Assembly: GCF_964188315.1 (NCBI RefSeq)
Contig: NC_135661.1
Span: 77,376,001-77,440,000, forward strand
Length of the DNA: 64,000 nt
Reading direction: 5' to 3'
Source of the DNA: Podarcis muralis
Lineage: Eukaryota
This document shows, piece after piece, positions 1,934 through 55,374 of this stretch. The position numbers and the translations under genes are program-made. The notes beneath the pieces are model-generated. The model was not told the DNA's origin and did not search any database. It saw only the letters and a list, made by a program, of their open reading frames with translations. Position 1 is the stretch's first letter, and each line of letters begins with the position of its first letter.

Positions 1934-2863
1934 TATACAATAATTTCAGACATAGCTAATGAGTTGTTTTATTTTGTATTCCCCCCCCCCCGGAATGGTT
2001 GAATCACTTTTAAAATCAATACAAAGAAAGGTATATTATGAAAAAACACGAGGACCTCTTGTAGCACCCCATCCAGCCATGCAAGGAGCCTCTGGTTGGG
2101 ACCTTCACTGCAGTAAATTATTGCTGATAACCATCCGGAAGAAACAAACAAAACCATTTTTGGACTCAATATTCTTTATTGGGCCTGCAATCTTTCATTC
2201 ACGAAACAGTCTGGAACTTCAAAAACACACTTTGGAGGAGGTGGGGGGAAGTATTGTGGTACTCAAATCAGGATGAGGAAGAAATTCAATTTTGTCTGCA
2301 TGTTAATGAGAAACTAACTCATTTGCACTTTCCAGACCAATATGCAACCTAAAACTCAGCCTTCAAATTTCACGTTTCTCATAATTTTGCAATGTAGTTC
2401 ATAAACCAAACAGTGTATACAAAAATGTATTTATGTGAGGAAAGTGCATATATTAGTGATAATAGCATTCTGTGTCTATTGTTCAAACTGCATGTAAACG
2501 TTGTGTTTATTAGGGTAAATCCATGCTAAAATGTGAGCAGATTTGCAATAGTTTTTTTAAGAAGCTAATTGCCGTAGAAATGTCGAGAACTGAATTTAAG
2601 GTTTAAAAAGTGAGAAACTTAATAGCACTGTAATTTGACAGATCTGTCCATTTCAGTGCCAAAATGCTCATGGCATGAATCCTTCGAGGTGGCTGGCATT
2701 GAGAGAGCGATCAGGAGAGAAACTTCATAAAGAGAAGGCTGGAGATACTAGGTAGCAGGAGGAGGAAGAAGCTCTTCCCCAAGATATGGTTGTCACTCGA
2801 TTTTGTTGTTGTTTTAGTTGTGGCTGGTCTCTGAGTTGTGGCTGATGCAGAACTTCTGGCTGG

Positions 2864-5800
2864 TTAAGCTTTTGCAGCTGGTGCTGGCTTTTCGGCATCG
2901 ACACATGATATTTTATTTATTTTGTAGGGGATTCCTGCAATTGTCACTTCATAGTTCTCTACACCGCACATATTGCTTGTTCCACAACCATGCAGGACGA
3001 ATTTCTTGGCACCTGCAGGTAAATATGGGGATCATCAGCAGATGTCAGTGGTGGCTGCTCTAGTACAGCAAATGGGGCACGACCCCTTCCATTTCAGTCT
3101 GCCCTCACCCAGCCCCCATCATCCTGCCTTCTGACTCACAACCAGGCCAAGCCTGACCCTCCTCCTCCCTTCCTAATTCCCTTCAGGGTTACCAGTTGTT
3201 CCTGTTGCACTGATGCAACTCATTTGACCATCTGTGCATGAGACCTTTCCACCTTTGCATTTCTCCTCCGTCTGAGCATAACATCCAGTTGGACAAGTGT
3301 ACCCATTCTCAGTCCAAGTAGTTGGGAGAACTAGGAAGCAAAGAAGAAAGAAGCAAATGGTCATATATGGAAAGTTTTTACATTAGAATCTCCGAAGAGC
3401 CCCGCTGGATCATTGACAGGCCTGCTTCACACAGACACAGCAGCCGCAGCCTTCCTGATGCATTCACACAACCACCCACTGAGTCCTCCCCACTCCCAGG
3501 TCTTTGTTAGCATATTCTTTGTCAGAATAAAAGAATGAGGTCTAGAGTCACGGGTTTGACACCTTTCCTGTCTTGTGTTAGGATGAAAGGTGTGGAGGGA
3601 CTAAAACTTCCTCTACTCCACCCTGTTCCTGCCAAGTTTCAAAAGCTAATTGAGAATGTTTTCATCATTCTGAAACCAAGGGCCCCACCAGACTGGTGTT
3701 TTATTTCGGGGTCATTTGTTCACCATGTTCTTCAAACTATAACACTGCATTAGTGATGGATTTCTCCTGGTTTCATTTGTCCTGTGGTGTTTCCTACTGC
3801 ATTATTGCTGACGGGAGGGGCTGTGGAACAACAGAAGTGGGACGAAAATAAACCAGGACATTTGTGGCATGAAAGGTGATGGGTTTTCAGGAGGAAGTAA
3901 TGGGATGTGCACTGATTGTAAATGAAGCAGTATGACCACCCCAATACCTCTGCACACGCAAACAGTATTGAGAGTGGAATTGTGTGTGACTGGCTCCATA
4001 GCCTCATGGGCACAAATCACCTTGAATGCACTATAAAAAGGACTTCGGGAGGGGTCCAGGTTTGCAATTCTGATATCAGAGATGGGCAGGTGATGACTTA
4101 CTTCCCCAATCTAAGTTTTTGTTGCACCCATCTTCAGTACAGCAAGCGGAGCTGGAGCGTAAATGTTTCCCGTCTCCTATGGTGATGGTAAAAGCATTGG
4201 CACAAGAATCATTTTTCCCACATGTATAGAATGTTGTAGTAAACTTGACCCCTGTATACCAGAAAAGGAAAAAGACAAACAACATGTCAGGAGATCCCAT
4301 TCCCCAGAATCTCTGCCGAACTCTGTGGTCTCCATTGTGCTTGCCCTTCCATCTGTTCCAAGTTCTCCCAAGGGAATATGGCTTGCTAGAGTACAAGCAC
4401 CTCCATCTTGCTGAATTAAGCTTTGGAAGTTCCAGATCAATTGTGAAGAACCTCAGTTCTGTGGATCAAAAGCAACCTCTTTCTGTTTCTGACCGTTCAG
4501 AAACGGCCCAATCCACACCCCTTACCAACTTCATTTTACATCCACCTTGAGTGTGTTTCCCTGGCTGGTATACATATCTGACAATGATTCTTGTCAGGTG
4601 GCTTCCAACATATATAAAAACATAATAAACATAATAAAACATTTAAAAACTTCCCTATGCAGGGCGGTCTTCAGATGTCTTCTAAAGGTTACATGGTTGC
4701 TTATCTCCTTGGTTCGGGGGTGGGATAACTCCATACCCTCCAACATTTATCCAGTGAAAATAGGGGCATCCTAAGGAAATGCAGGACATTCCAGGATCAA
4801 ATCAGAGACCAGGTCAGCTTCTGTAAATCTGGGACTGTCCCTCGAAAATAGGGAAATTTGGAGGGTCTGCTACCAGCTTCCAACTCCTTCTTAGTCTCAG
4901 AGTTGTCCCTTGCAGAACTCAGCTGGGAGCAGAAGGATGGGGACGAAAGTAGAACGATTTGGCTCTGCCCATCATTGGCCTTCTTCCATACCAGTCCTAA
5001 TGGGCACCAGACTCCATTGGATAGATTGTGGCACAGCGTGGAGCATGCCACCAGGCAAGGCCAACATCTTCCTTACCAAACATTGTGCTCTCATCCTTGA
5101 TGACCACGCAGGCATCCAAACCACTGACACAGTCTGAAACCACAGAACCTTCAGTTCCTTGTTGGCACTTAAGGGCTGGAAGAAGAAAGTAAAGGCTGGT
5201 CAAAATTATATCAGAGTGAAGACATAACAAATATAATGGGAGAAGTTCTGCTGTGGCTCTGTGATTGGAGGAGCCTTCCCCCCCCCCCTTTAGAGGACAA
5301 TTAGGACAATGGGAGAGGTTAAATACCTCAGAAAAAATAAGGGGGCAGATGACGGAGATAAATATATATACAAAATTAAATATTTGGGAATATATTTGAT
5401 AGACAAGAGTATTAAGATATTTAAAGACAATTATGAGAAAATTTGGAAAAGAAATAAAAAGGAATTTAGAAATTTGGGGAAGAATGAATTTGTCATTGTT
5501 AGGAAGAATTTCAGTGACTGAGATGAATGTATTGCCAAAAAATGTTGTTTTTATTTCAATCAATCCCGGTGAGAAGCGATTCGAGCTGCTTCAAAGAATG
5601 GCAAAAAGATATTTCAAAATTTATATGGAAAGGGAAGAAACCAAGAATAAAATATAAACTACGTACTAACAGACATCAAAGATAGAGGAGGTTTCTCTCT
5701 ACCGGATTTAAGATTATATTATGAAGCATCTTGCATCTGCTGGATCCAGGATTGGATAAAAGTAAAAGATACAGATTTGCTAGATTTAGAAGGCCATGAC

Positions 5801-8014
5801 AATAGACTTGGCTGGCATGCGTATATATGGTACCATAAGGCAAAATTACATAAATGATTTTGGAATCATATAATAAGAAAATCAGTTTTTTAGGTCTGGG
5901 AGAAATATAAAGATCTATCAGAACAAAAAACAAAACAAAACACCATGGTGGTTCTCCACGCTAGAAGCAATAGCTCTTAAAAAAATGAATCTGAGGACAA
6001 ATTGGTCCACATATAGATAATCAGTTAAAACTAAAGGAGTTTGTAAAAGTCAGAGAAATGGTTACAGATTGGTTACAATATTTTCAATTAAATGAAACCT
6101 TTAAAAATGATAAAAAGAAAGGATTTAGCTATGAAGTGTCAAGATTTCAGAGAGAGATAATAGACCATACCAAATTACTGTCAAAAATGTATAATATGCT
6201 CTTGGAATGGAATACCAAAGAGGAACAGGTCAAATCTGTCATGATAAAATGGGCAAAAGATGTGGCACACAATATACAAATGATAGACTGGGAAAAGCTC
6301 TGGAAGAGAGATCTGAAATTTATGGCATGTACCTCATTGAAAGAAAACCATATGAAAATGATGTATCGGTGGTATCTAACCCCGGTTGAATTAGCAAAGA
6401 TTTATTGAACAAGATTAAATATGTGTTGGAAATGTAAAGAAGTAGAAGGTACCTTTTATCATACGTGGTGGAAATGGAAGGTTGGATAGTTCTCACCCAG
6501 GGTCACCCACAAAAGTCTCACAATCAGAACAGCGGCCATCAATCTAGTCTCTCACTATAGACTTGCTTTTCATGGGCAAGCCCAAGGTCAATAGTAGGTC
6601 TTAGTTGTGGGATTCCCATAGGCATCTGGCTGAGAATAGGATTGTGGACTATATGGGCTACTGGCCTGATCCTGCAGGCTCTTCCTGTGTTTTTCTACCA
6701 AATACAGAGGTAAAGGGACCCCTGACTGTTAGGTCCAGTCGTGGACGACTCTGAGGTTGCGAGGCTCATCTCACTTTATTGGCTGAGGGAGCCGGCGTAC
6801 AGCTTTCGGGTCATGTGGCCAGCATGACTAAGCTGCTTCTGGCGAACCAGAGCAGCGCACGAAAATGCCGTTTATCTTCCCACTGAAGCGGTACCTATTT
6901 ATCTACTTGCACTTCATGCTTTCGAACTGCTAGGTTGGCAGGAGCAGGGGCCGAGCAACGGGAGCTCACCCTGTCATGGGGATTCGAACTGCTGACCTTC
7001 TGATCGGCAAGCCCTAGGCTCTGTGGTTTAACCCACAGCCCCCCTTGCTATGAGGTGTATAAAAAGCTGAAGCAACAACAGACAAAGAAAACATTACAAA
7101 AATACAGAGTTACATATAAAAACATTACATTAATAGAACATTACTAATATATATATAAATCAATAGCAATTCCTTTCAATCTCTTTTTTATATACATATA
7201 AATTTTATTAGTTTTTTAACATATCATTTTCAACAGTAATTAAACATACTTTTACATCTTATTCAATTTTTTTGACTTCCATCAGTCCTGTCTGGAAATT
7301 TTCCTTCTTAGTATGCATTTCAAATTTTCCCTATTACATTTCAAACTCATAACCAATATCTCTATCTTTTTCTGCTTTGTAACACTTTGTATATTTCTCC
7401 TTACAAAACGTCTTGTAGTCCTACTAGCTTAATTTGTTGATTACAGTTGCTCTTCAAAGAATTTAACAATTCCTTTCATTCTCAGCCTCTCGGTTCTCAC
7501 CCAGGGTCCAAACACACTCTCAGCAAACCCATAAAAGTCTCGCAATCAGAACAGCAGCCATTGATCTAGTCTCTCACTATAGACTTGCTTTTCATGGGCA
7601 AGCCCAAGGTCAATGGTACTTCCTTAGGTTTCCCACAGCTGTGTCCCATTGAGCTGCCCTCTCCACACCCAGTTCAAGGTACAGCAGGTGTGCTAAGTCT
7701 CCCAGGGGGTCCAAAGGATGGGGAAAGTTTCTCCCTCCACTCACAGCTCTTTCTTCACCCTCTGTCCCCTCCTCGTTTTCAAGCTGGCATACAGATCCTC
7801 CTGTGGTAAGAAAGTTCTCTGCAAAGTTTTTAACCCTCTGAGATTAGCATCAAATGATGGCACAGTTGGTATGTGATTCCAAAGTACTAGCCTTTCACTT
7901 TGTCCTTAATAGCATCATAGGAAAAGGGATGTCATCAATGATAAATAACTTACGTGGATCCACAGAGGCAACTAAGAGTGGCGAAAGAAGGCAGAGCACA
8001 AGGAGAGGCACCAT
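2864..8014 (-). CDS. Gene A: PLA2-inhibitor-gamma/PINLYP-like protein with two LU domains, 198 aa, predicted secreted. Exons 7954-8014, 5077-5175, 4102-4251, 3193-3330, 2864-3012
   Basis: All introns are GT-AG and phase 1. Product: MVPLLVLCLLSPLLVASVDP-PLKCQQGTEGSVVSDCVSGLDACVVIKDESTMF-GVKFTTTFYTCGKNDSCANAFTITIGDGKHLRSSSACCTEDGCNKNLDWG-ILPTTWTENGYTCPTGCYAQTEEKCKGGKVSCTDGQMSCISATGTT-GAKKFVLHGCGTSNMCGVENYEVTIAGIPYKINKISCVDAEKPAPAAKA*. It has a signal peptide, a CCxxDGCN LU terminus and an NGxxCP second domain. The frame continues past TAA (2864-2866) to TGA at 2711-2713. AATAAA at 2506-2511. Confidence 0.85.
5330..6480 (+). mobile_element. L1 LINE ORF2 fragment (late RT to C-terminal zinc-knuckle region), frameshifted, in intron 1 of gene A
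   Basis: Broken frames read YLGIYL, LSLLGRISV..MNVLPK, GGFSLPDLRLYYEA and CWKCKEVEGTFYHTWW, typical of L1 ORF2. Confidence 0.8.
6708..7039 (-). mobile_element. Sauria SINE
   Basis: The reverse complement reads gctgtgggttaaaccacagagcctagggcttgccgatcagaaggtc...ggttcgaatcccc (tRNA-derived head) and ends ggtccctttacct. Confidence 0.9.
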
Positions 8015-17257: not shown

Positions 17258-19134
17258 TTAGGAGAGGAACTTCATGAAGAGAATGCTGGAGATACTGGGT
17301 AGAAGGAGGAGGAAGGAATTCTTCCCCAAGATATGGTGAGTGCAAGCCTTTGATGTTGTTTTGGTACTTGTGGCTGGTTTTTGAGTTACGCCTGATTTTT
17401 GAGTTGTAGCTGATGCAGGAGTTGGAGGTTTTGCAGTAGTTGGGGGAGTGTCACACGATATTGCATCCATTTTGTAGGGGATTCCTGCAATTTTCAATTC
17501 AAAGTCCTTTACACCGCACATATTGCTTGTTCCGCAACCCAGCAGGACGAACTTCCTGGCACCTGCAGGTAGACATGTTGATCAACATGTGAATTAGTGA
17601 AGCCTGCTCTAGTAGAACAAATGGGGCATGGCCCCTTCAACATCAGTTTGCCCTCAGCCACCCCTCACCTGCCAGCCATCAGCCCCACAACCAGTCTTGA
17701 CCACCAGCTTCCTCCTCCTGAGTCTCAGTGTTGCCCCTTGTAGAATGGAGCAGGGAAGAGGATGGGGACCAAACCAGAGTCAGTTTACTCTGCTTGTCAG
17801 GGGCTCCTCCCATGCCTATTGGCAATGATCCTATACCAGAGGCGCTGGCTTGGGCCTAACATGGCGTGGGCCCAGTGTCGCACCACACAGACGATGTCAC
17901 AGGCCTAGGACACCTCGCACGTGTCCCACGCCTATGACATCATACATGAAATGCGCATCACACCTGCGACACCAGGAGGTGGTTGAGTGCCACGCAGCTT
18001 CAATGGCTGCAGTTCTACTTCTCTCATGCTTGGGAGGAGCCACTAATGCTGCATCATGCTCGGCGCTCAGAGGATAAAGATGTCTTTATATTGAGCATGC
18101 GAAATAGGTTTTTTTTCCTGCTCCACCCATCACTGTCATCTAACCTCTAAGAAGGGAATTTATTTAGTTATTGAATTTATATCCTACCCTCCCTATAAAA
18201 AGAGCCTGGGCAGTGAGCATAGGCATAACTTATTTTTATTTTTATTGATGCAGTTGTTTTTTTTAAAAAAATCGCCTTCTGTCTGAAAAAGGGACCCCAC
18301 CTTTACCCCTTGTAACTCAAGGTGGCATATTTGGTTCTCACAACCATCACTGCCCTATTTTATGTTTACAATGTGGCTTGCATGGACTCCAACTGAGCCT
18401 CTTTCCTATACCAGGCCTCAGCTACAGCTCCATTCCCAGTATGCAGTTCCAATAACAAGCATATTACTTACTCTTCCATACCAAGTGTTTCTCTGTGTGA
18501 CTGCATCAAGGTAAGCCTCCTCTCCTAACAAGTATTCAGAAGCTGAAAGCCTCAAAGCTGTGTGCTAACTCTGCATATCAGTCAATAGTATTCAGAATCA
18601 TCTGGTAAAACACAGCCCTCTTGGCTAATAGGCATTGGCAGCCTTATCCTTCATAAATATTTCTAATACATTTTTGAAGGCCATCCAGTGTGGTGGCCAT
18701 GATCACTACATGATCATGTACCTACGGGACCGCCTCTCCTGGTATGCCCAACGGAGGACCATAAGGTCCATAAACAGCAACACCCTAGAGGTCCCAGGCC
18801 CTAAGGAAGTTAGATTAGCCTCAACCAGAGCCAGGGCCTTCTCAACACTGGCTCCGGCCTGGTGGAACGCTCTATGTCATGAGACCAGGGCTCTGCGGGA
18901 TCTGATTTCTTTCCGCAGGGCCTGTAAGACAGAGTTGTTCCACCTGGCCTTTGGCTTGGAATCAATTTGATTCCCTCCCCCTCTTTCTTTTTCCTTTCTC
19001 CTCCGGTGAAGAGGCTGCATCCTAATGTTTTAATGTTGTATTTTAATCTTGTTTTTTAAATTGTATTTTAATCAACATGTTTTTATTATTGGTTGTTAGC
19101 CGCCCTAAGCCCGGCCTTGGCTGGGGAGGGTGGG

Positions 19135-19189
<55 letters not shown>

Positions 19190-21265
19190 ATCTCATGGGA
19201 CCAATTCCCATCATTTAACTATGCACTGGGCAAAGAAATATTTTCTTTTGGTCATCAAGAATGTTCCAACATTTAGCTTAATTGAATGGTCCCAAGTTCT
19301 ACTCAAATGAGAAGGATTCAATCACACACTCATGACACTTTAGCGCTCCAAAGAACGATGCACACATGCCAATCCCACCATGCTCTGGCACAGCACCTGT
19401 TCATTTCAATGATGCTTGCACCAGAGAACATCCTGGAAGATGGTTCCCCAAGAGTCAGGGCTGCAAGTCTCTTGTTCTGCCACCTGAGTCATCTCATCTT
19501 GCCTGATGGTTGGTCCACCTCTGGATCGTCCAGAGGCAGCATTCCCCTCCCACCTGCTCCCCCACCCCACGGAATCCCTCCTCCTCCCTTCCTAATTCCC
19601 TTCAGGGTTACCAGAGCTTCCTGTTGCATTGATGCAACTGTTTTGAGCATCTCTGCATGAGACTGGTCTATTCGCGCAATCATTCACCGTCTGAGCATAA
19701 CATCCAATTGGACAAGTGAGCCCATTCTCAGTCCAAGTAGTTGGAAGAGCTAGGAAGCAAAGAAGAAAGCAGCAAATTGTCATATATGGAAAGTTTTTAC
19801 ATAAGAATCTCCGAAGAGCCCTGCTGGATCATTGACAGGCCTGCTTCACACAGACACAGCAGCCGCAGCCTTCCTGATGCATTCACACAACCACCCACTG
19901 AGTCCTCCCCACTCCCAGGTCTTGGTTAGCATATTCTTTGTCAGAATGAAAGAATGAGGTCTAGAGACACAGGTTTGACACCTTTCCTGTCTTGTGTTAG
20001 GATGAAAGGTGTGGAGGGACTAAAACTTCCTCCACTCCACGCTGTTCCTGCCAAGTTTCAAAAGCAAATTGTGAATGTTTTCATCATTCTAAAAACCAAG
20101 GGCCCCTCCAGACTGGTGTTTTATTGCGGGTTCATTTGTGCAACGTGTTCTTCAAACTATAACACTGCATTAGGATGGATTTCTCCTGGTTTCATTTGTC
20201 CTGTGGTGTTTCCTACTGCATTATTGCTGACTGGAGGGGCTGTGGAGTAACAGAAGTGGGACGAAAATAAACCAGGACATTTGTGGCATGAAAGGTGATG
20301 GGCTTTCAGCAGGAAGTAATGGGATGTGCACTGATTGGAAATGAAGCAGTATGACCAGCCCAATACCTCTGCACATGCAAACAGTATTGAGAGTGGAATT
20401 GTGTGTGACTGGCCCAATAGCACCATGGGCACAAATCACCCTGAACGCACTATAAAAAGGACTTCTGATATCAGAGAGGGGCAGGTGATGACTTACCTCC
20501 CCACTCTAAGTCTTTGTTGCACCCATCTTCAGCACAGCAAGCAGAGCTGTGGTGCAAATATCTCCCGTCTCCTACGGTGATGGCAAAAGCATTGGCGCAA
20601 GAATTTCTTTTTCCACAATCATAGAATTTTGTATTGAAGCTGACACCTACTTACCGGAAGAGAAAAATACAAATGGTCAGAAGAGCCCATTCCCCAGAAT
20701 CCTTCACTCTCTGCCTAACTCTATTGTCTCTGCTCTGCCTTCCCCTTCCATCCTTTCCAAGTTCTCCCAAGGGAATATGGCTTGCTGGAGTACAAGCACC
20801 TCCATCTTGCTGAAGTAAGCTTTGGAAGTTCCAGATCAATGGTGAAGAACCTCAGGACTGCGGACCAAAGGCAACCTCTTTCTGTATCTGACCCTTCGGA
20901 ACCGGCCCAATCTACACCCCTTACCAACTTCGTTTTACATCCTCCTTGAGTGTCTTTGCCTGGCTGGTATTTGTCATCGAAATCTGACAATGATTCTTGT
21001 TTTCCTTGACTGGATGGAAGCTAGAGAGAGAGATGGGTGTTTGTGGGCAGAACCTAGCCTATCAAGCTAAAATGTACATTTATTGCTTTGCCCACTTTTG
21101 CTTATGACCCTGCCCAGTCTGGTGTGTGGCCCTCAAAACAGAATGTGGCCCTCAGCTTAAAAGGGAATTCTGCTCTGGAACACTGCCAGAAATCTCAGGA
21201 GGTGGTTAGTGGTAGAGGAGAACGTCCTGGCTGGTCCATTAAGTGAATGGGGTACTTCCTGTTCT

Positions 21266-21309
<44 letters not shown>

Positions 21310-24300
21310 TATTATCATTATTATTATTTTTATACTATTTATACCCTACCCATCTGACTGGGTTGCCCCAGCCACTCTGGGTGGCTTCCAACATATATAA
21401 AAACACAAATAAACATTTAAAAACTTCCCTATCTAGGGCTGTCTTCAGATGTTTTCTAAAGGTTGCATGGTTACTTATTTCCTTGGTTCGGGGGTCGGAT
21501 AACTCCATACCCTCCAACATTTATCCAATGAAAATAGGGGCATACTAGGGAAATGCAGGACATTCCAGGATCAAATCAGAAACCGGGGCAGCTTCTGTAA
21601 ATCCTGCACTGTCCCTGGAAAATAGGGAAACTTGGAGGGTCTGCTACCAGCTTCCAACTCCTTCTTAGTCTCAGAATTGTCCCTTGCAGAACTCAGCTGG
21701 GAGCAGAAGGATGGGGACGAAAGTAGAATGATTTGGCTCTGCCCATCATTGGCCTTCTTCCATACCAGTCCTAATGGGCACCAGACTCCATTGGATAGAT
21801 TGTGGCACAGCGTGGAGCATGCCACCAGGCAAGGCCAACATCTTCCTTACCAAACATTGTGCTCTCGTCCTTGATGACCACGCAGGCATCCAAACCACTG
21901 CCACAGTCTGAAACCACAGAACCTTCAGTTCCTTGTTGACACTTAAGGGCTGGAAGAAGAAAGTAAAGGCTGAACAAAATTATATCAGAGTGAAGACATA
22001 ACAAATATAATGGGAGAAGTTCTGCTGTGGCTCTATGATGGGAGGAGCCCCCCCCCCCACTTGAGAGGACAATTAGGACAATGGGGGAGGTTAAATACCT
22101 CAGAAAAAATAAGGGGGCAGATGACGGAGATAAATATACATACAAAAGTTAAATATTTGGGAATATAGTTGATAGACAAGAGTATTAACATATTTAAAGA
22201 CAATTATGAGAAAATTTGGAAAAGAAATAAAAAGGAATTTAGAAATTTGGGGAAGAACTAGGAAGCAAAGAAGAAAAAGCATATTGTCATCATATGGAAA
22301 TGAATGAATTGCTATGCCCCACAAATAACCCAGAGATGCATTTTAAATGAAAGGACACATTCTACTCATGTAAAAACACAATAATTCCCGGACTGTCTGC
22401 GGGTCAGATTTAGAAGGCGATTGGGCCGGTTCCAGCCCAGGCCTTAGTTTGCCTACCCATGATCTGGATGGTACAAGGTCACATTCCATTCCTTCCACTG
22501 TTTACAGACTAGTGTACGAGCCGCAACCATAAATAACTCACAGAGTACATATCCAAACTCTGCCATTAAAATTCCGGTCTGGAGTTCTTCCTTGGCACAC
22601 AGTTAAAACCATAAGAAAGCATAAGAATGCACAAAGCACCTTGTCCTCTCCCTTTCTTTCTTGGCCATTGTAAGGATTCTCAAGCTTCTAAGAAAATATT
22701 CAGCTACCTTCAAAAAGCCAAGCCCAGCCCTTTTGGCAGCTGATTGATTGTAGCCTATTAGCATATGTCAGTCCAGGAGCACCTCTTGATTCATGCCAAT
22801 TGTCCAAATTATGGAGGAACCAACCGCAACTCATGCCAGAGTTGGAGGCTTGTCCATGGCAAGGACACTCCCAGGTTGCACCCGATCTGCCTTTCAAGTT
22901 GGCAGACACGGGCTTGAGCAGCACAGTGGGGTGCAGTGAGCTCCCCCGATCCCACTGGGGACCATTGCCAATAAATCCTGGCTTTCCCCTGCCTGAATGG
23001 CAGCACGGAGCTACTGGCATTGAGTTCGTGATGTAGCCAGAAACCTACATGGATTTATCTAATCCTGCTTTCGTTCCATCTAACGCAGTACACACCACCC
23101 AACCTTGTGGCAGTGAGTTTTAGAAGGTGGCTATGGATTGTTGTGCAAGAGGAAGCACTTCTTTCGTCAGGCCTAAACTGATTGCTAATTTTCTTAATTG
23201 GGTGGCTCAAGTCAGAAATGAGTCTGTGTGGCCCTCCAGATGTTGTTGGGACTACAATTCCTATCATCTCTGCCAATGTCATATCCTGGTCATTATTAGA
23301 GATCCTTTCCAAAAATTCCACTCATTCAGTGTTCTCCCTGGAATCTGGACTTCCAAATTACTTGTTCTTGCTCCCAATATGAAAAAGATCTGTTGGGAAT
23401 TTTCCATTGTTCCATTTTTTTTAAAGAGTATTTCTTTATATTATATGGATTATAAACTACTAAAGATTATAGCAGCATACAGCCATGAAACTTTAACAAT
23501 AAACAGTTCAACAGTTCTCAGAAATGAAATCAGATATGCATCCTTCAGGAACGTCAGCAAAAAATAGAATAGAATAAAACAAAGGTTTTAGCTCGACAAA
23601 ATGTGTACGATGTCGGAAAGTGTCTAACTATCCTTCATGCACTGCCTCCAGTACATGCAGCATCACGGGGGGGGGGGGGACACCCCATAGATGGTTGCAG
23701 TGAATGGGCAGCTATATAGACAATACTAGCCTATTCCTTGGAAGAAAGCCTGCCAATCAAACTAGTAGCTGTGGTGCCTGTGGTGGGTTGGAAGCATGAC
23801 GTTATCCTTAGATGGCACTGAGACACGGTGATGGGAAGGTGGGGATTATACAGATGCCTCGGCAGGAGCATGGAATGGGGAACTGCATGGCCCCAATCTC
23901 ATGGTCACTCCAGCCCAGACCTGTTCAGGTAAGCATCTTCACATGCTGCTACTGTGAACTTAAGATGCACAGCTGATATTTGTGTGCAGTATAGAGGTGG
24001 TGTACTGCAAGCACCCATTTTCTCTGCTGTCAAAAGTGGCATAATTTCTGCCAGTCCCAGTTCCACCTGCAGCATGTTGAGTTTGTTGAGAAAGCCAAGA
24101 GAAGGACAACTGGGAGCAGGAAACTATTGAGGCAATAGCATTAGGCTGGTTAGATGTCAGGCACCATAGCTACCCATCCAAAATATGCATCTTTGGTGGT
24201 AGCCCTACTCAAAGTAGACCCACTGAAGTCAGTGGACATAACTTAGGTTCAGTTGTTGTGATAGATATACTCTGAGCCGGACTTAGCTGAATAAAACTCA

Positions 24301-25011
24301 CTGCATATTTGAGCCACTGCCATTAAAATTTACAGCGAGCTTAACAGTTGTTCTAACAGCAGTGGTTTGATCTCCAGACAGATTACTACCAGTCTCCTGG
24401 TTGCCAAATCCGCCCACTGAAGTGCTAGTCTTGAAGTCCAAACACAGACACTAGCCCTTGATTTCCCTTGATCAGGCAGGGGAAAGTCACTAGTCACTCG
24501 ATGGCCCTTGTGGTCTCTTCCAACTCTATGATTACTGGTGGATTGATTATTGAATTTCTATACCACTTACTATATTAAAAATATATCTAAGTGGTGTACA
24601 AAAAGCTGAGGCAAAAACAGACAAACAAAATATTACAAAAACACACATTCATTTTCCTTCTGACACATCCTTCCCCTCAGCCTCCGGGTTCTCACCCAGG
24701 TCCAAACAAACTCTCAGCAAACCCATAAAAGTCCCACAACAAGAAGAATTTATGGGAACAGCAGATATCACCCTAGTTTCTCACTCTAGAGCTGCTTTTT
24801 ATGGGCAGGCCCAAGAAGGACAGTTTTTAACCCTCCTAGATTAGCATCAAATGATGGCTCAGTTGATATGTCATTCCAAAGTCCTGGCCTTCCATTTTGT
24901 CCCTAACAGCATAGTAGGAGAATGGATGTGATCAATGATAAATAACTTACGTGGATCCTGAGAGGCAACTAAGAGTGGCGAAAGAAGGCAGAGAACAAGG
25001 AGAGGCTCCAT
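17258..25011 (-). CDS. Gene B: PLA2-inhibitor-gamma/PINLYP-like protein with two LU domains, 250 aa, Ser/Thr/Pro stalk and predicted GPI signal. Exons 24951-25011, 21851-21949, 20497-20646, 19612-19749, 17258-17562
   Basis: GT-AG phase-1 introns; exons 1-4 are the same size as in gene A (61/99/150/138). Product: MEPLLVLCLLSPLLVASQDP-PLKCQQGTEGSVVSDCGSGLDAC...ACCAEDGCNKDLEWG-ALPTTWTENGLTCPIGCYAQTVNDCANRPVSCRDAQNSCINATGSS-GARKFVLLGCGTSNMCG...ISCDTPPTTAKPPTPASATTQKSGVTQKPATSTKTTSKACTHHILGKNSFLLLLPSISSILFMKFLS*. AATAAA at 17116-17121. Confidence 0.88.
18715..19190 (+). mobile_element. L2 3' fragment (second subfamily) in intron 4 of gene B
   Basis: Reads RTIRS..NTLEVPGPKEVRLASTRARAFSTLAPAWWNAL..FRRACKTELFHLAF; (ATT)n tail. 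Confidence 0.8.
22100..22257 (+). mobile_element. Truncated L1 fragment, paralogous to about 5330-5485
   Basis: Near-identical to the start of the gene A intron-1 L1; ends abruptly at a foreign splice-acceptor sequence. Confidence 0.75.
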
Positions 25012-27376: not shown

Positions 27377-29632
27377 TTACACAGGTGAGGATGCAAACAC
27401 AGAGAAACTCAAGAAAGCAATAACGTTTACAAAGGGGGACCCAGTTAGCTGGATGGCTGCAGAAGGGCCATAATCCTCAGTTTGCCCATCAGTGCAAACT
27501 GCATACTCAGTCACAATGTAGAGTTTTCCTGCATAGGGCACAAGGTCATTGACATCCAAGGAACAAGCTGAATCAGTTGCACAGCCTTTGACGGAGAAGT
27601 TTTGTTCCGGTAAACCTGCAGAGAGAGAAGAGCAAAGACTCAAAATGAGAGGAAGAGCAGGTCCCCTTTCGTACCTCATTGCGAGAAGTGAGGCTACAGG
27701 GAACCAGACAGAGGGCCTTCTCGGTAGTGGCGCCCGCCCTGTGGAACGCCCTCCCATCAGATGTCAAAGAGATAAATAATTACCTGACATTCAGAAGACA
27801 TCTTAAGGCAGCCCTGTTCAGGGAAGTTTTTAATATGTAACGCTGTACTGTTTTTAACACTGATTGGGAGCCGCCCAGAGTGGCTGGGGAAACTCAGCCA
27901 GATGGGCGGGGTATAAATAATAAATAATAATAATTATTATTATATTATTATTATTATACCTAGCTTGTTTTCCCCTGCATATGATGGTTTGTGTCAGAGT
28001 CTAATTGCAGCGGGGGCTTGACCCAGCTGAATCTGGTGTCCGCAGAGCCTCACAGCTCACAGGTTCCCCCAACAGCATGCTATAAAGGAGGGAAGAAGTC
28101 AGGGAGAAGGCAGCAGCCAGAGGTGAAGCATAGGTTTGGAAAGTAGATAGACTTAGAAAGCCAAGTGTGGGAGAAAGAGCAGGCATGGACCTGGAGCTCT
28201 TTCTGGGTCACCACTCAGCAGGGATGGCCCCTCTTATTTCACCACCTGTGGCAAAATGGGAAAACGTTGCCCCTGCCTCCCCTCCAAAATCTTTCTTACT
28301 GGGGTCGTGCAGCTGCAGCGGTGGGAAGACGGCAGTTTGTCCAACCTTTAAACAGCTCACCTGGGCCACTACCACCTGTGTTGCTTGCTTCCTTCGTCAC
28401 TTCCTGCCTGCCATTCTGTCATCATGCTGCCTATGAGCGGCCGTGCAAATTACAGCATGACGACAGCCTTACTTTTATATGTATATAGGAAGAAAAGGAA
28501 GATGGGACAGGAAGCAAAAATGATGATAAAGAAGTGAAAATAAAAGGAAGGTGGGATCTAAAACTTAAAAGAAAAGAATAATAGTCACTCTGAGGGAACT
28601 TCTGAGATTTCTGGGGGGGAAATGGCATGCACCCACCCCTGGGAGCATTGTCTGTGGTGAAAAGTACTAGGTTGGGCAATGTTTTGGGAAGCCTATTCCC
28701 TGTCTACACTTGCCTCCCATCCTTAATTTTGATTTGGGCATTCTTTCTGGAGAATCCCAGCCTTACCGTTTGGTAGTAGGAGACAAAGAGGGACATGGGG
28801 TGATTGTTTTTTTTAAATACACGCACGCAGAGTGGTGGTCAAAAGTGTGCCCAGTGATCATCAAGTCAATTTGAGGGTGTGTAGTGAGGTCACATTCACT
28901 CCTTACTTTACTTTTAACACATGCATATGCCACTTTAAGAGTTGTACCTTCCCCCAAAGAATCCTGGGGATGGTAGTTTGTTAAGCACATTGACCCCATA
29001 GAGCTACAGTGTCCAGCACTCTTAACAAACTACAGTTGCAAGGACTCATTGCGACTATCAAAGTGGTACAAGAGTTCTTGAAATACAGGGTGTGGCTTTG
29101 ACCTAAGTCTCACAGAGTCCTGTTGCCTTTTTCACAAGCTAAGGGCTGTGGATAAAAGATTCCTCCCTGTCCCCACTATCACCGACTTCCCAGGTTCATC
29201 CTACTTTCCACCCACAACCCAGGTTGGAAAAGGGGAAATTAAGGGTAAGGCAGAAGCCATCTTTAAAGGCTTTCAACAAAGCTCCTTGGAAAGGTCCCAG
29301 TAACAGCAGGGTGTGTGTGTGCGTGTGTGTGAAGAAATACCAGCGTATAGCCCAACAAGGGAAATGCACTTTTCTTCGATTCCGGTGCATTCGACGCGCT
29401 CGTGGGCCTGGCAAGGGCCCCGGTTAAAACTCTCACACCCTGGGCAAGTCAACCCGTTTTTGGTAGAACTCGCAGGAGTCACTGGAAAACAATCAGAGGA
29501 AGATCTCACGTGAGCGAGGGCAGCGAGAGGTAGCTCTGATGAAACGGACTCAGCCCATGGAGCTAAGCAAACACGGTAAGCCCCAAACTTATGCACATTT
29601 AACTTGTGCAATTTCAGCTTTACAAGCCTTGC

Positions 29633-29668
<36 letters not shown>

Positions 29669-32600
29669 AATAGGGGGAGGAAAAAGAGACTCTGGCAATC
29701 CCACCTGCCATTGAACTCAATGTGTCCTGACCATACACAATTTTGGCTTTAGCTATGATCCCCAGAAACTAAAACCCACATAAATTGTAGTCTGTGCTTT
29801 GGTAGTCTCAAGGCTAGATTACTGCAGCATACTCTATATGGGGCTGTCCTTGGATCTGGCCTGGAAGCTTCAGCTAGGGAAGAACGTTGCAGGTGGAGCG
29901 GTGATGAGAACAGATCACCGTCAACACATGACACTCCATGGGCCAGGTTGCCCCCAAGAATGAGCCAGATCCACTAGTCTATCTAGTTCAGGATTGTCTA
30001 CTGATTGGCAGAAGCTCTCTGGGGTTTTGGGAGTGCCTGGAGATGCCTGAGAAGGACACACTGCCAGGGGGCATGAAAAGGGGGCTCAAACTGCAGCAGA
30101 CCAGTAGTGTCTGCAGATGTAGGAAGCTGCCTCACAGAGTCAGACCATTGCACCATCTAGCTTAGCACTGACTGCACTGACTGCCAGAGGTGCTCCAGGG
30201 TTCCAGCTTGGGCTGGATGATAGATTGTCCCAAACTGGTTTGAAGCCCGCATTGTGATATTGGTTTCATGATGTATCACGAATCATGATTTGTGTGCGTT
30301 ATGCAAAAATCTCAATGTGGGGAAAACACAGAAGCCAGGTAATGCCTCTACATAGCTCCATCTTTATTTTAGACGTCAGGATATATTGGTATGTTGCTAT
30401 GTTTAGCTGGTGATATATCGTGATGTTGAAGACCAGATATCGCACAGTCCTAATTCCAGGCAGGGGACATTCCCAAGTCCTTCCTGGAGATGCCAGGAGT
30501 TGAACCAGGGACCTTCTGCAAGGAAAGTGCTCTACCACTGAACTAAGGACCTTTCCATGCACTGAGGTCTTCTGCTGAGACCCTTCTTCAAAAGCCTCCT
30601 TCACCAGACAAATGCTCTTCAGTGGCATGGGAGATGGTCTTCTCAGCAGAGGCACCAGTTGCAGAACACCCACCCCAACAAGATTTGCATACCACCTTCC
30701 TTGCTATCTTTTTAGCATCAGGCAAATACAGATTTTTTATTTACCCGGGCATTTTAACCAGTTGCAAATCCTAGCCTGCTTTCAAGGGGTCTGTTCGCTG
30801 CTTGATTTTAGTGGGGTGGTGCTGTGGTTCTTGAATTGTGGCATTAATTTTTGTTGTTACACAGCCCTGAAATCCAAAAAAAGGATGGAAGGTGGTACAT
30901 GACTCCTTTCTTTCCTGTGATGTGAGGTTTGCCTTGTATTGGAATAATAAAGGGCAGGAGTCAGCAAACCCATATTTATTGATAGGAGAAGTATAATAAA
31001 ATAAGGTATTATTTGGGAGTGCAGATCAGGAAGTTTAACTAGGAGAACAGAACACATTGTAGCTTCATCAATGGCAGGCTTCTTCAACCTCGGCCTTCCA
31101 GATGTTTTGAGACTACAATTCCCATCATCCCTGACCACTGGTCCTGCTAGCCAGGGATCATGGGAGTTGTAGGCCAAAAACATCTGGAGGGCCGAGGTTG
31201 AGGAAGCCTGATCAATGGCATATTGGGTACAAACAGGAAACTGTGCATCTTTCATTGTGCAACTATTTAGATATATTTATATAATCTTTGGAAATATATT
31301 AAAGTTAAATTCACAGATCAATTTTTGCTTTTAAATAATAATATTTCCTTGCATTTATAATATAATAAATTCCCTTCTTTGTCCAGATCTGGATGGTGGC
31401 ACATGGGGGGGGGGGGACGTTTTCTGAGAACTCCCTTAGGTCACTGGTTCAAGGTCACTCATTGCAGATTTGCATCCCCATTACGGTTGCTTTATGAACC
31501 TGCCAACTCGAACCTCATGGACCACCATTGTCCTCAAGAGGGAAGCTACCAAAGGCGCACACACACACACACACACACACTGCTTTGAAACACTCTGCAA
31601 GCTCAATCAATACTCACTACTTAGAACCAGTTCTTCGTTGCATCCAGCAGTTCCACAACAGGCTATGTTGCTCCGGATTTGCCTCTCCGTGGATGTGCTC
31701 AGCGTGAAGGCTCCTGGTTTGCAGGCACTGCGGTTGATGCAGCTTTTGTATATCCCAGTGGGGCTGACACCTCTGCCTGGAGAAAAAGAGGATGTGACTA
31801 TTCCTCCTGAGCATGGGAGAAATGTCGTGTCAATTGGATCAAAAGCCTATCAGCAGGGACTGCCTTCTCTGATCGGACCAATGGCACGTGTAGCCCAGCA
31901 TCCTGCTCTCACGGGGCAAAACCTATGGGAAGCCTGAAAGCAGGCTCTGAGCATAAGAGCACCCTCCCTTCCTGAGGATTCCAGCAACTAGAATTCAGGA
32001 GCACGCCGCCTCCGACAGAGGAGGTAGAACATACCCATCAGAGTCAGCAACTGCTGCAAGGCTTCTCCTTCACGAATTTGTTTGGAAGATTCAGGGCAGA
32101 TAAAAGAAACCTTCACACAGCACATGGTTAAAACTATGGAACTCACACCCGCAGAAGGTAATGATGGCCCCCAAATGGGGTGGTTTTAAAAGAGGATTAG
32201 GCAAATTCATGGCCACTAGCCATAATGGCTATGCTCTGGCTCCACAATCGGAGGCAGCAACGCTTCTTCTTCATCATCATCTTTTCATTGGTTTTTACTG
32301 AAGAATTTTTTTGTGCCACAAAACCAATAGACAAACACATATAGCACCTCCACTTGCCATTCAGAGAGTCTTTTTGGCATCAGACACTATTGCCACAGAC
32401 ACTGTGCCGTTGGAGGAAAAGAGAGGGGAGTGGGGGGAGGGAGAGAGATGGGGGGATAATAATGATCTTTCGTTCTATTGCATAGTGTCTGTGCAGGGTT
32501 TTTGTGTCAGCATCACACGGGTAGGTCCTTTATTTATTTATAAATTTGTTCATTTTTATTGTCATTGCAAGAGATTATGGGGTCCAGAGCTTGGATGGTT

Positions 32601-37694: not shown

Positions 37695-37903
37695 CAGCGT
37701 CACCTCGGGTTAAGAACTTAATTCCTTCTGGAGGAATTCTTAACCTGAAACTGTTCTTAACCTGAGGTAACACTTTAGCTAATGGGGCTTCCCGCCGCCA
37801 CGCAATTTCTGTTCTCAACCTGAAGCAAAGTTCTTAACCCGAGGTACTATTTCTGAGTTAGTGGAGTCTGTAACCTGAAGCGTCTGTACCCGAGGTATCA
37901 CTG
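37695..37903. mobile_element. Tc1/mariner-type MITE
   Basis: Same family as 1703-1933; TA flanks. Confidence 0.8.
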
Positions 37904-39279
37904 TACTTCCCTCACGTCTTCAGGGGAAAGTCACTGCGGTCAGCTGGAGAAGTAATTTACAGCAGCAAGCATAACCTTGCGACCCATTGCGTGCTTGAAA
38001 AACACCTGACTTTCCCAGTTAGTTTATGACTAACACGTCTTGTTTTTACAAGCAGGTTGTATATACATTACATACACTTTAAAACACACACACCAACACA
38101 CACACTAATACAAGGCATTGAAAACAAGGAAGAATGGCAGGATTTTATCTGGGGGTGTATGTGTAAGAGGATGAACACCCATTTACCTACAGACATGGGG
38201 CAGAGAAGCATTCTGCTCTGGCTGCAAAGAGGTGGGGTGTGTTCCCTATCCCCGAATCCACTCTGCCGCAGTCCTGCAAACATAGAAGCATCCTGAATCA
38301 TTTTAACTTTGCAGAGAGCTGGTGCTCTGGCCTGGACATTTTTATGGTTAGAGGCGCCATTGAGGCTGCTTCCTGACTGTAGCTATTTTTGGGTTGGAAA
38401 TCCAGGACTGTCCCTGGAAAATAGGGACATTTGGAGTGTCTGCAGTTGTTGGAGGATTGCGGCTCCCATCAGCCCCAGTCAGCATGGCCAAGGATGATGG
38501 GAATTGTAGTCCAGCAACATTTGGAGGGCCAAAGGTCCCCCACCTCTGAGTTAGAGGTAAATCCCATTCAGTTCCATGGGACTTGCCCCCTGAGAAAGGG
38601 ATGTTAGATTGCAGACTTAGCCATCTTTCTCACTCCTTATTACCAGGTTTTCAATGGGATGATCAGACTTCACAGGTCAGCTCAGGGTGTGAATCTGCAA
38701 TTCCCACGCTCTGTCTCCCACCTTCCAAATCCTATCTCTGAATAAGGAACGGTGGGGTGGAAATACCAGGACTTTTGGCATCTCTTGACCCATTGTTCTT
38801 GAAGCAAAGGCACATGCACTCTAATGGCAGCGTAATGGCCATAGGATAGCTGAAAGAAGACCAAAATAGCAAAGGAGACTTTGGACTCATTTGGCAGCTT
38901 TCTGCAAACATTTGTTCACGGCAAACACTGGCACCTCTCATAAATAGCACCATTCTGACAGAAGGACAAGCTGTAAAAATTAGGAGAACACAGCTAACCG
39001 GGGATAACCAGAGTTCACAGGCAACAGAAAGTGTGCACACCCTTTTTAAGAACTGGGGATCTCCTAATTCCTACCCACACACCACGTTATTTGAAAAGGA
39101 AAAGTCATCATGATACATGATCAGCAAGAGATCACAAGCAAGGCCAGTTTGTCAATTGGATGGATGATCCATTCTCCCCCCCCCCCCAAAGTACAGCCAA
39201 ATGGCCCACTAGCAGACCACTGGCTAGGAATGAAGGGTGTGAGATTTATATGCTCGGTCAGACTATTTGCCCATCTAGT

Positions 39280-39854: not shown

Positions 39855-41367
39855 CCAGTCTACTACTATCACATACACCAGAGATGAAGGGCCTCAGACC
39901 CAACAAGCAGATGCAGACCACCAGCCCTTGCCATATGGCCCTTGGGACTCTCTCTAGGCCCAGAATGACATCCCCTGGTCTGGTTCTGCTTTGCACACAC
40001 CTCTTGATCATTTTTGCCTGGCTCAAATGCAGTCTCGAACTCTGCTAACGTCTCTTGCTTCCCAGGGTGGAGAACAGAGAGAGGCATGGGAGTGCATGTG
40101 AAACAAGCCAACTGGGCATGGGTAAAGTTCAATTACTCCGCCCGCTTTTCCCTCTGGCCCTGCCCACCACCAACACATGGCCCCCAAAAGATTGTCTGTA
40201 AGGGAATATGGCCCTCGGGCTTAAAATGTTCCCCAACCCCTAATTGGGCTGGGAAAGATCCTCACCTGAAAGCTATTGCCTATCAGAGTGGAAAACAACA
40301 GTGAGCTAGATGGGCCCAATGATCTGGCTTGGTATAAGGCAGCTAGGACCAGCTCAAGGCATTTTGCTGCCTGAGGCAAAGGACAGTATGATGCTCCTGT
40401 ATTCAAAGCCCACCAGACCGCAATGGGACAATGCTGTTCCCTGAGGGTGGGCAACCTAGCTTGGGGGCGGGGCAAAGAAGGCCATGTACCAAGCTCAGTT
40501 TTATCTTCAACACCTTTCTAACACTTGCTGCCCCAGCAACATTCACCACTTGAGGCAGGGGTCTCATTACGCCTAATAGTAGGACCGGCCCTGAAAGCAT
40601 CTTCCCATGTTCCTTACATCAAACAAAGCATCAGTGTCTGTTAAGTGAGCACTTTCAGCTAGCCAGCTATCCAAAACAAGATTCAGCTGTCAGGGTGATT
40701 GGCTTCTGGCCATGGAATGGGGAAGGTTACAAGGTGTGTACACTTGAACTTATGGCCTGTCTGTTGACCACACGTGTGCACTCAATGTGCAAATCTGAGT
40801 GGAATGGAACCTTTCGCACCAAGTCAGACTGTGCATCCATTTAAAATGTGAGTACACCTTCAACTCTTAGGCCCAATTAAGGCTATGCCACACCAGAAAG
40901 TAGGAAGAAAATGGTTTATTACAAGGAAGAGGCAGGGTATATACCTTGCTTTTCATGGCAAGGTTACAGATATGCAGGCAGCAAATAGTTGTTAAGCACA
41001 CACCCACCCCTTCATTCTACGGAGTAAAGAAAACCTGGAGAGTGATCACAGCAACTTTTCACGGACTCAGGCTAAGAGAAAGAAAAATAAGGGATGGGAG
41101 GGGTATACCTGATCTAGGAGCAAGCAGAGCGTGAAGTCAGGGATTTGAGATCTGTGCCTTCTGCGAGTGTTAAGCTCTCCCCCTCAGAATCCTATGCCAC
41201 CAAGGAACAAGATCTCTTTCCTGTTCTTTTGTCTGTGTGCATATAAATATTAGTGGGGGGTGGGGTGGGGGACGACGACAAGGAAAAGCATTGTATTAGG
41301 GAACAGTGCTTTGCAAAACATTTTTTTCCATATTAACTAGGAAGAATTGTATACCAAAATTGATATA

Positions 41368-41593
41368 CAGTGGTACCTTGGGTTACATATGCTTCAGGTT
41401 ACACACTCCGCTAACCCAGAAATAGTGCTTCAGGTTAAGAACTTTGCTTCAGGATAAGAACAGAAATCGGGCTCCGGTGGTGCGGCGGCAGCAGGAGGCC
41501 CCAGTAGCTAAAGTGGTGCTTCAGGTTAAGAACAGTTTCAGGTTAAGAACGGACCTCTGGAATGAATTAAGTACTTAACCCGAGGTACCACTG
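41368..41593. mobile_element. Tc1/mariner-type MITE
   Basis: TA|CAGTGGTACC...GGTACCACTG|TA. Confidence 0.85.
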
Positions 41594-45750: not shown

Positions 45751-46257
45751 GGTGTCTTTGTGGCGGAGGCTCTGGTAGGAGCACAAGGGGGGGAAAAGAG
45801 AATCAGGGTTTTTGCTGTTCCAAGTCTGCTAGGTTCTTTGTTTCTACTTCTCCTGAATGCCACTGTCTAAATCGCTAATCCTTGGCACCCTTCCAAAATG
45901 AGTAAGGGAAGGAAATCCATAAATAGGGAAGGGTTTCGGCTTCCAAAGAGGACTGAGCTCCTGTTCCTTCAATTAGTTGTGCAGAAGAGGAAATGTTGGT
46001 TGGGGGCATTTGTCAGCCCAGAGTAAGAAAAACTGCACTTGGCAAAATTCCCTCCACACAACTCAACTCGGCTCATACAGCTGGTGCACCCTTTTCAAGC
46101 TTATTGTGATCGGGATGCTAGTCGGGACAGATCTTAGGCCTGATCCACCAGGGCTTTCCTTACATCTTCCATGGCCACCCAATGTGCAAATGGTGAACAC
46201 TTTTTTCAGGTAAGGCTGCAAAGCATGACCAGTTATGCTGTCACGGGGAGGGATGCC

Positions 46258-46442: not shown

Positions 46443-46994
46443 GGGATGCCAGCTATTTTTTGTTTAATTATGCCCAATACATTTCAAACAGTTGTTCTTT
46501 TTCAAAAACAGGTCGCAATACAGTCATACCTCGTGTTGCGAACGTGATCCGTGCGGGAGGCACGTTCGCAACCCGCAGTGTTCACAACCTGAAGCGCCGC
46601 ATCTGCGTGTGATGACATGAGTGTGATGTCATTTCGCGCTTCTGTGCATGTGCCAAAATCAGTACTTCCAGGTTCGGCATGGTCCGCAACCCGAAACCGC
46701 ACAACCCGCAGCATTCATAACCCGAGGTATGACCGTAGTTTGCGGGATGAAGTTACTTGTTCAGAAGCAGAAGAAAAGCTGTTTGAAAAGTGCTGGGATT
46801 GATTTAAAGCAAAACGAAACACCCCCAGCTACATCTCCTCCTAAACCCTCCTTTGCACTCTTCCTTGAGTGTTTATGCCTGGCTGGAATGTGTTCTTGAA
46901 CTCTGATTATGCCTCTTCCTTGGATGGAGAACACAGCAGGGTTCATGAGTGGATGTAGACATTAGCCTTCTCCACAATAGTAAGATTTACATTA

Positions 46995-51162: not shown

Positions 51163-51163
51163 C

Positions 51164-51181
51164 TGGCGACGAGGATGGGAT
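51164..51181 (+). promoter_or_regulatory. Primer-binding site, complementary to the tRNA-Ser(GCU) 3' end
   Basis: TGGCGACGAGGATGGGAT is the reverse complement of ATCCCATCCTCGTCG-CCA (tRNA identity from memory; check GtRNAdb). Confidence 0.8.
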
Positions 51182-55364: not shown

Positions 55365-55374
55365 AGGGGAGGGG

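Follow-up and report, generated by a model that had tools for sequence, protein, structure and literature searches.

Results

Two tandem paralogs encode two-domain three-finger proteins

The 64,000-nucleotide (nt) stretch of the Podarcis muralis genome analysed here (assembly GCF_964188315.1, contig NC_135661.1, positions 77,376,001 to 77,440,000; hereafter the window) carries two neighbouring genes, A and B, that resemble the gamma-type inhibitor of phospholipase A2 (PLA2), PLI-gamma, and we have studied how the exons and introns of these two paralogs diverged from each other. A and B are tandem neighbours on the minus strand and consist of five exons each, with every intron in phase 1 (Table 1). 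Two three-finger units of the Ly6/uPAR (LU) type, with eight cysteines apiece, are encoded by exons 2-3 and by exons 4-5, respectively. These 16 cysteines (C24, C36, C43, C64, C70, C90, C91, C96, C116, C120, C128, C135, C142, C159, C165 and C186) are invariant across A, B and all paralogs, and in both genes the splice sites, the reading frames and 16 of 16 cysteines are undamaged. Exon 4, which is central to this analysis, translates as I-LPTTWTENGYTCPTGCYAQTEEKCKGGKVSCTDGQMSCISATGTT in A and as A-LPTTWTENGLTCPIGCYAQTVNDCANRPVSCRDAQNSCINATGSS in B; in A, it codes for the linker LPTTWTENG and for cysteines 1-5 of domain 2 (C116, C120, C128, C135 and C142). The cysteine spacing of this domain (C-x3-C-x7-C-x6-C-x6-C-x16-C-x5-C-x20-C) agrees with the LU pattern of CD59, and fingers were assigned solely from this spacing: a structure prediction by AlphaFold2 on an 11-sequence family alignment gave no usable fold (pLDDT, the per-residue confidence score, of 37.6) and was discarded, and a sequence search of the PDB yielded no meaningful match.

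Past the TAA codon of A, the frame remains open for 50 further codons (2713-2866, minus strand), down to the position of the stop of B, and this open frame still spells a Ser/Thr/Pro stalk and a hydrophobic tail. The product of A is predicted to be a secreted protein of 198 amino acids, and the A protein of the older P. muralis annotation stops at the same position. B would give rise to a form of 251-275 amino acids, whose hydrophobic C-terminus resembles the signal for a glycosylphosphatidylinositol (GPI) anchor and which is probably attached to lipid. Judged by its sequence, A seems to descend from a GPI-type ancestor that one nonsense change turned into a secreted form.

B is identical to the P. 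muralis protein XP_077788701.1 (P0001; "phospholipase A2 inhibitor gamma subunit B-like"), a current RefSeq model; its exon 4 is a 100% match to residues 129-175 of P0001, and its exon 5 matches the same protein at 99-100%. The model of A in the older P. muralis annotation, XP_028598309.1 (P0003), shares ~94% identity with A of the window (87% in exon 4), and no protein identical to the latter was present in the protein collection searched. Fused gene models of P. lilfordi place the genes of the cluster in the order C-B-A-D on the minus strand. The NCBI names of these genes, PLI-gamma-like or PINLYP-like, are automatic and based on homology. In profile searches, the PLA2_inh family (PF02988; cut-off 22 bits) matched the A-type protein P0003 with 34.8 bits and B (P0001) with 20.1 bits, the latter below the cut-off, and UPAR_LY6 (PF00021) covered domain 2 of B and of the paralogs D and F with 22-24 bits, under its cut-off of 24.8. 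A of the window was searched one exon at a time, and single exons yielded weak matches only. The nearest relative outside Podarcis among our searches was PINLYP of Anolis (34% identity), and word-based protein searches returned Podarcis proteins and Anolis PINLYP only. From these sequence relationships we infer that A and B might bind PLA2; a literature search recovered no paper joining Podarcis with PLA2 inhibitors. No RNA reads were placed on exons 2-5 of A in three runs (6-12% of each run read; tissue not recorded), and reads placed on A fell solely on an intronic repeat at 4527-4874. The missing reads on these exons do not demonstrate that A is silent.

Table 1. Exons of genes A and B and segments of the A/B alignment, in positions of the window.
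Feature	Positions	Strand	Description	A/B divergence
Exon 1 of A	7954-8014	minus	signal peptide MVPLLVLCLLSPLLVAS	
Exon 1 of B	24951-25011	minus	counterpart of A exon 1	
Exon 2 of A	5077-5175	minus	first half of LU domain 1	3%
Exon 2 of B	21851-21949	minus	counterpart of A exon 2	
Exon 3 of A	4102-4251	minus	second half of LU domain 1, including CCxxxxCN; weak PF02988 match	18%
Exon 3 of B	20497-20646	minus	counterpart of A exon 3	
Exon 4 of A	3193-3330	minus	138 nt, phase 1, AG/GT borders; first half of LU domain 2	19.6%
Exon 4 of B	19612-19749	minus	138 nt, phase 1, AG/GT borders	
Exon 5 of A, coding part	2864-3012	minus	second half of LU domain 2 (C159, C165, C186); TAA at 2864-2866	23%
Exon 5 of B, coding part	17258-17562	minus	same domain half, then Ser/Thr/Pro-rich stalk and hydrophobic tail	
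High-identity tract	A 3155-5484	minus	3' end of intron 1 through exon 4 into the start of intron 4	
Island 1	A 4148-4355	minus	last 104 nt of intron 2 and first 104 nt of exon 3	
Island 2	A 3196-3267	minus	3' half of exon 4 (hidden Markov model)	22/72 differences
Hypervariable core, codons 125-132	A 3245-3268; B 19664-19687	minus	EEKCKGGK (A), VNDCANRP (B)	
5' flank				18%
Start of intron 1				13%
Tract introns				6.2% (119/1916 aligned positions)
Rest of intron 4				24%
3' region				16-22%

High A/B identity is restricted to the middle of the genes

A and B can be aligned over the whole gene, and high identity is confined to A 5484-3155. Segmentation by a two-state hidden Markov model, which returned the same segments at three transition settings, delimits a tract of 2.3 kb in which the two genes are ~95% identical (low-state divergence of 0.050-0.053, as compared to 0.13-0.24 outside). 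The divergence of 13-24% outside the tract marks A and B as old paralogs. In their raw divergence, exons 3 and 4 simply match this background.

Two islands at ~22-30% divergence lie inside the tract of ~5%. The intron half of island 1 holds 22 differences at 99 positions and 14 gap columns (P = 9e-9 against the tract rate) and its exon half 23 differences at 104 positions, and its silent sites are raised as well (6.5 of 22.8 differ; P = 0.001 against the tract rate, which is ~5% in introns), with a ratio of nonsynonymous to synonymous divergence (dN/dS) of 0.65. The last 46 nt of exon 3 fall into the low state. Island 2 is followed by 41 identical nt (3155-3195) that run into intron 4, and then by the background of 23%. 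The switches in divergence are sharp and independent of exon borders. The longest perfect A/B run, 137 nt (P = 0.045), adjoins exon 2. Two insertions are specific to B: one of ~1.8 kb (17780-19575) begins 41 nt after exon 4, at the end of the high-identity tract, and one of ~380 nt (~21000-21380) lies within intron 2 and holds (ATG)n/(ATA)n repeats.

Replacement changes in exon 4 cluster in one finger

Between A and B, 27 of the 138 nt of exon 4 differ; 16 of its 46 codons change the residue and a single codon (CTC/CTT) is purely synonymous. Exon 3 differs at 27 of 150 nt (15 residues changed, 6 purely synonymous codons) and exon 2 at 3 of 99 nt (1 residue, 2 purely synonymous codons). The original prediction, which had read exon 4 of these genes as diverging almost only by amino-acid changes next to a conserved intron, was accurate in its counts. 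Its 15 of 45 residues in exon 4 correspond to the whole codons, to which the split first codon (I/A) is added here; its one synonymous change, the 15 residues and about six synonymous changes in exon 3 and the one residue in exon 2 were recovered on recounting, its count of 5 differences in the neighbouring 180 nt of intron 3 was exact, and the changes in exon 4 are concentrated between the cysteines of finger 1, where EEKCKGGK of A stands against VNDCANRP of B.

Exon 4 is significantly more diverged than the adjacent 180 nt of intron 3 (Fisher P = 8e-7) and than all tract introns combined (P = 4e-7). The Nei-Gojobori method assigns 3.5 synonymous and 24.5 nonsynonymous differences to the exon (dS 0.12, dN 0.27, dN/dS 2.25); the synonymous count is 3.5 and not 1 because third-position changes in multiply hit codons contribute under path averaging. 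For this A/B pair, the contrast between nonsynonymous and synonymous sites is not significant (Fisher P = 0.19), and a dN/dS above 1 is thus not statistically established; domain 2 as a whole gives 1.68 (P = 0.25). Divergence at the replacement sites of exon 4 exceeds that of the introns, and that of the silent sites of the same exon, by a factor of ~4.

The differences are unevenly spread. The first 63 nt of exon 4 hold 5 and belong to the low state, and the last 75 nt hold 22. They peak in a hypervariable core of eight codons, in which 14 of 24 nt differ (58%; P = 2e-4 even against the 23% background) and which cysteine spacing would place distally in finger 1 of LU domain 2 (C120-x7-C128-x6-C135). 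Outside the core, the silent sites of exon 4 (1.5 of 26.6 differing) fit the tract rate and reject 23% (P = 0.008), and the replacement sites (12.5 of 87.4) exceed the tract rate (P = 0.007). Neither version of the core has a second copy, a local donor or an inversion within the window.

At two of the synonymous A/B differences (3254 and 3326), another individual is polymorphic and carries an allele with the base of B. Discounting both, a post-hoc step, raises dN/dS of exon 4 to ~4-9, with a nominal P of 0.009-0.065 for the contrast between nonsynonymous and synonymous sites. We also considered the variants of this individual as traces of exchange between A and B and rejected this notion: 7 of 12 carry the base of B and 5 of 12 occur where A and B are the same, and since ordinary young polymorphism in A is expected to give such a 7:5 split, the variants are not evidence for conversion.

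Exon 3 is an old patch and exon 2 has changed in concert

For exon 3, dS is 0.25-0.36 and dN/dS 0.65-0.73. Since the diverged island includes intron sequence, its silent sites are raised and dN/dS is below 1, exon 3 is a patch of old sequence and not an exon sped up by selection on its residues. Over the whole gene, dN/dS between A and B is ~1.09.

Exon 2 behaves differently in comparisons within and between genomes. Orthologues were compared at the protein level, using the older P. muralis assembly, P. raffonei and P. lilfordi. A and B of the window differ at 1 of 33 residues in exon 2, as compared to 3-4 of 33 between A of the window and A of the three other genomes, and 4 of 33 between B of the window and B of P. 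lilfordi. Among the sequences compared, V32 is present in the two window copies only; at site 41, A of the window shares D41 with B in place of N41 of the A type. This concerted change, which rests on three sites, carries the signature of a recent B-to-A interlocus gene conversion that would be lacking in the other P. muralis assembly.

Paralog-specific residues are conserved between species

B of P. lilfordi differs from B of the window at 0 of 50 residues in exon 3 and 2 of 46 in exon 4 (I118K and R131T), so that two species share the core motif of B, VNDCAN(R/T)P. Across four genomes, A shows 0-1 differences in the 50 residues of exon 3; exon 4 of A varies moderately (3-5 residues), with site 132 being K, Q or P across three A genomes. 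Orthologues of D differ at 0-2 of 50 residues in exon 3 and 0-1 of 46 in exon 4, and the different types are separated from each other by 14-23 of 50 and 15-19 of 46 residues, respectively. In a tree of exons 3-5, the stems of B (0.38) and D (0.41) are long and the terminal branches short (0.005-0.036). Given these near-identical orthologues within each type, the residues of exons 3 and 4 that set the paralogs apart predate the split of the Podarcis species and are mostly constrained now. Ongoing diversification was not seen in B or D and is modest in A.

When the changes were polarised with D and the paralog sets E (P0005, P0006 and P0013) and F (P0007, P0017 and P0020) as outgroups, B-derived changes outnumbered A-derived ones by 12 to 1 in exon 3, 8 to 4 in exon 4 and 7 to 0 in exon 5; this outcome is sensitive to the rooting and presupposes that A is no conversion mosaic. 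The two P. muralis assemblies differ at five residues of exon 4 of A, four of which match the neighbouring gene D. Other genes of the cluster differ between these assemblies, too: P0005/P0006 and P0004/P0012 are RefSeq versions.1/.2 from the older and the newer P. muralis assembly and differ at several residues, with ~9 of 234 for P0005 and P0006. To judge from such version differences, allelic or lineage variation in the cluster appears unusually high.

Discussion

Gene conversion between A and B is the probable main cause of the contrast between exons and introns

Tandem paralogs are known to evolve in concert, and interlocus gene conversion can homogenise them while functional segments that resist conversion are maintained by selection as islands. 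We consider it probable, at about 0.62, that the contrast between exons and introns of A and B arose mainly in this manner, that is by interlocus gene conversion between two old tandem paralogs in which two islands were kept apart. Repeated conversion between A and B would have homogenised ~2.3 kb in the middle of the gene to ~5% divergence, with two short islands, at the border of intron 2 and exon 3 and in the 3' half of exon 4, retaining or reaching the old level of ~22-30%. The residues that distinguish the paralogs would have arisen before the species split, mostly on the B branch, and would since have been held by purifying selection. In finger 1 of domain 2, selection would act on amino-acid identity, either through positive selection that drove B in an ancient burst, or by eliminating conversion tracts that would level the difference, or in both ways. 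We infer conversion as the cause, and selection on finger 1, from two combinations of results. Given that exon 2 changed in concert and that the divergence profile is a mosaic, the intron clock is likely to have been reset by conversion; and since silent sites of exon 4 look homogenised, its replacement sites are not, and the core is fully different, selection is likely to have acted on the residues of finger 1.

Several points weigh against this explanation. Conversion of the introns rests on the pattern within one genome and on three residues of exon 2, with orthologues compared as proteins. The silent sites of exon 4 are few (31) and, taken alone, compatible with either history. The 5% divergence of the tract may date back to the species split, and repeated conversion is then indistinguishable from a burst that came after a duplication or a large conversion. 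For the 41 identical nt that follow exon 4, conservation of a splice element is an alternative to conversion, and the very short branch of A could result from A being the conversion acceptor.

The exon/intron contrast had originally been read in another way: A and B would be recent duplicates whose introns, at ~5%, give their true age, and exons 3 and 4 would then have accelerated under diversifying selection, as is known from toxin and inhibitor genes of snakes. We regard this as rather unlikely, although part of the evidence fits it. Exon 4 does outpace the intron next to it (P = 8e-7), its dN/dS is 2.25, or ~4-9 without the two polymorphic synonymous sites, its silent sites are at the level of the introns, and the core of finger 1 has been replaced as a whole. 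The divergence profile along exons and introns bears out the contrast at exon 4; it also limits the low divergence of the introns to the 2.3-kb tract, outside which A and B differ by 13-24%. With such flanks set against a ~5% tract, with intron sequence inside island 1 and with both exon types present in P. lilfordi, the similarity of the introns does not give the age of the duplication, and the recent duplication that this dating had implied was not borne out: flanks, intron 4 and exon 5 are diverged by 16-24%, and the island around exon 3 reaches 104 nt into intron 2, at a dS of 0.25-0.36 and a dN/dS below 1. Exon 2 carries the signature of conversion, both exon types are nearly unchanged in P. 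lilfordi, with no continuing diversification in B or D, and for the window pair the excess of replacement over silent change in exon 4 falls short of significance (P = 0.19). Of the diversifying selection originally assigned to the fingers of domain 2, the clustered replacement excess in finger 1 stands, but the differences are old and conserved.

A further explanation would be an import from elsewhere in the family, in which the exon 3/intron 2 tail and the exon 4 core of B were converted from a distant third paralog. The patches are sharp-edged and island 1 includes intron, as expected from such an event; the core, at 58% divergence, is near random and looks like a replacement rather than a series of point mutations, and the five exon 4 residues that vary between A alleles, four of them identical to D, make patchy exchange plausible. 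On the other hand, the motifs of B are absent from the paralogs compared (A, C, D, E, F, P0021 and Anolis PINLYP), no donor lies within the window, exon 3 of B is nearer to A (15 of 50 residues) than to other paralogs (22-23 of 50), and the same B sequence is present in P. lilfordi, all of which renders an import improbable. Least of all do we favour decay, in which one copy would be a pseudogene or a redundant duplicate under relaxed constraint. A whole-gene dN/dS of ~1.09, three RNA runs without reads on exons 2-5 of A and the lack of a protein identical to A of the window in the collection would suit this idea; the RNA runs, however, were read to 6-12% and are of unrecorded tissue, B is a current RefSeq model, both genes have intact frames, splice sites and all 16 cysteines, and the near-identity of orthologues within each type requires constraint. 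Decay is therefore very improbable.

Relation to known systems and possible functions

Among known systems, A and B come closest to PLI-gamma of snake blood, with which they share two tandem three-finger units and 16 half-cystines. CNF, the PLI-gamma of Crotalus durissus terrificus, comprises 19 + 181 residues and 16 cysteines (PMC5175389), and A likewise combines a signal peptide with ~180 mature residues. In contrast to PLI-gamma, A and B come from a lacertid lizard, not a snake, and are known here from sequence alone; B departs further from the snake proteins by its stalk, its GPI-like tail and a PF02988 score below the cut-off (20.1 vs 22). In non-venomous snakes, PLI-gamma has been proposed to act as prey resistance (PMC9543476).

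The small serum protein genes of Protobothrops flavoviridis display an intron distance of ~0.05-0.065 and a KA/KS (the nonsynonymous to synonymous ratio) of 1.5-1.7, which was read as accelerated evolution (PMC6609765). A and B are similar in being tandem paralogs with an intron distance of 0.05-0.06 and an exon 4 dN/dS of 2.25. Unlike the Protobothrops genes, they show the low intron distance only in the central tract, between flanks diverged by ~20%, one of their diverged islands includes intron, and their exon differences are conserved between species. With a conversion mosaic, A and B share abrupt switches from ~5% to ~22% that ignore exon borders, type-specific residues that are kept, and an exon 2 that is closer within the genome than to its orthologues; two full sequences and protein-level orthologues do not fix the direction or the age of the tracts.

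Amphibian sodefrin precursor-like factors (SPF) are two-domain three-finger pheromones related to PLI-gamma. A and B share with SPF the features of a secreted two-domain three-finger family that expands in tandem, a likeness known from sequence only.

Given that conversion can reset introns and leave functional segments behind as islands, exons that diverge faster than introns in a tandem gene family do not by themselves point to accelerated evolution. The genes are already annotated and the evolutionary mechanisms known, and the gain provided here is accordingly modest. It marks one finger tip, in domain 2, as the place where a secreted gene and its probably lipid-anchored neighbour stay different, and this finger tip offers a concrete target for binding studies with PLA2 or another ligand. 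As a tentative extension, to which we give little weight, finger 1 of domain 2 might be a specificity determinant that selection keeps different between neighbouring genes despite ongoing conversion, and exchange among A, B and D might diversify A, in a conversion-driven system similar to that of the major histocompatibility complex (MHC). If this were true, the role of these genes might lie in prey-side defence against snake venom PLA2 or in an SPF-like chemical signal.

Other features of the window

Upstream of B lies a third, distant two-LU-domain gene, C (27377-31800, minus strand), with an exon-3-like segment at 31628-31759, an exon-4-like segment at 29351-29476 and a last exon, with hydrophobic tail, inside an open reading frame (ORF) at 27377-27757. 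It resembles Anolis PINLYP (P0022), is fused to B in the P. lilfordi model P0009 and is probably the orthologue of PINLYP. Just downstream of A, the assembly contains a gap of 214 N (976-1189).

The remainder of the window includes an element at 50796-55745 (plus strand) with an uninterrupted gag-pol-like ORF of 1358 amino acids (51288-55364), flanked by direct repeats of ~370 nt with 99.7% identity to each other (50796-51165 and 55375-55745); by its sequence, we judge it to be a young long terminal repeat (LTR) retrotransposon. On the minus strand, a single-exon ORF of 416 amino acids (44536-45786) with a GxxGxGKS P-loop looks like a gene for an interferon-inducible (IRG/IIGP-type) GTPase. 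Repeats of ~200 nt that resemble short interspersed nuclear elements (SINEs) are present in at least 8 copies, 74-92% alike, among them 1732-1935, 37702-37905, 41366-41595, 46993-47222, 57716-57945 and 60081-60252, and a tandem duplication of ~338 nt, with copies that are 98.8% identical, occupies 49360-50034.

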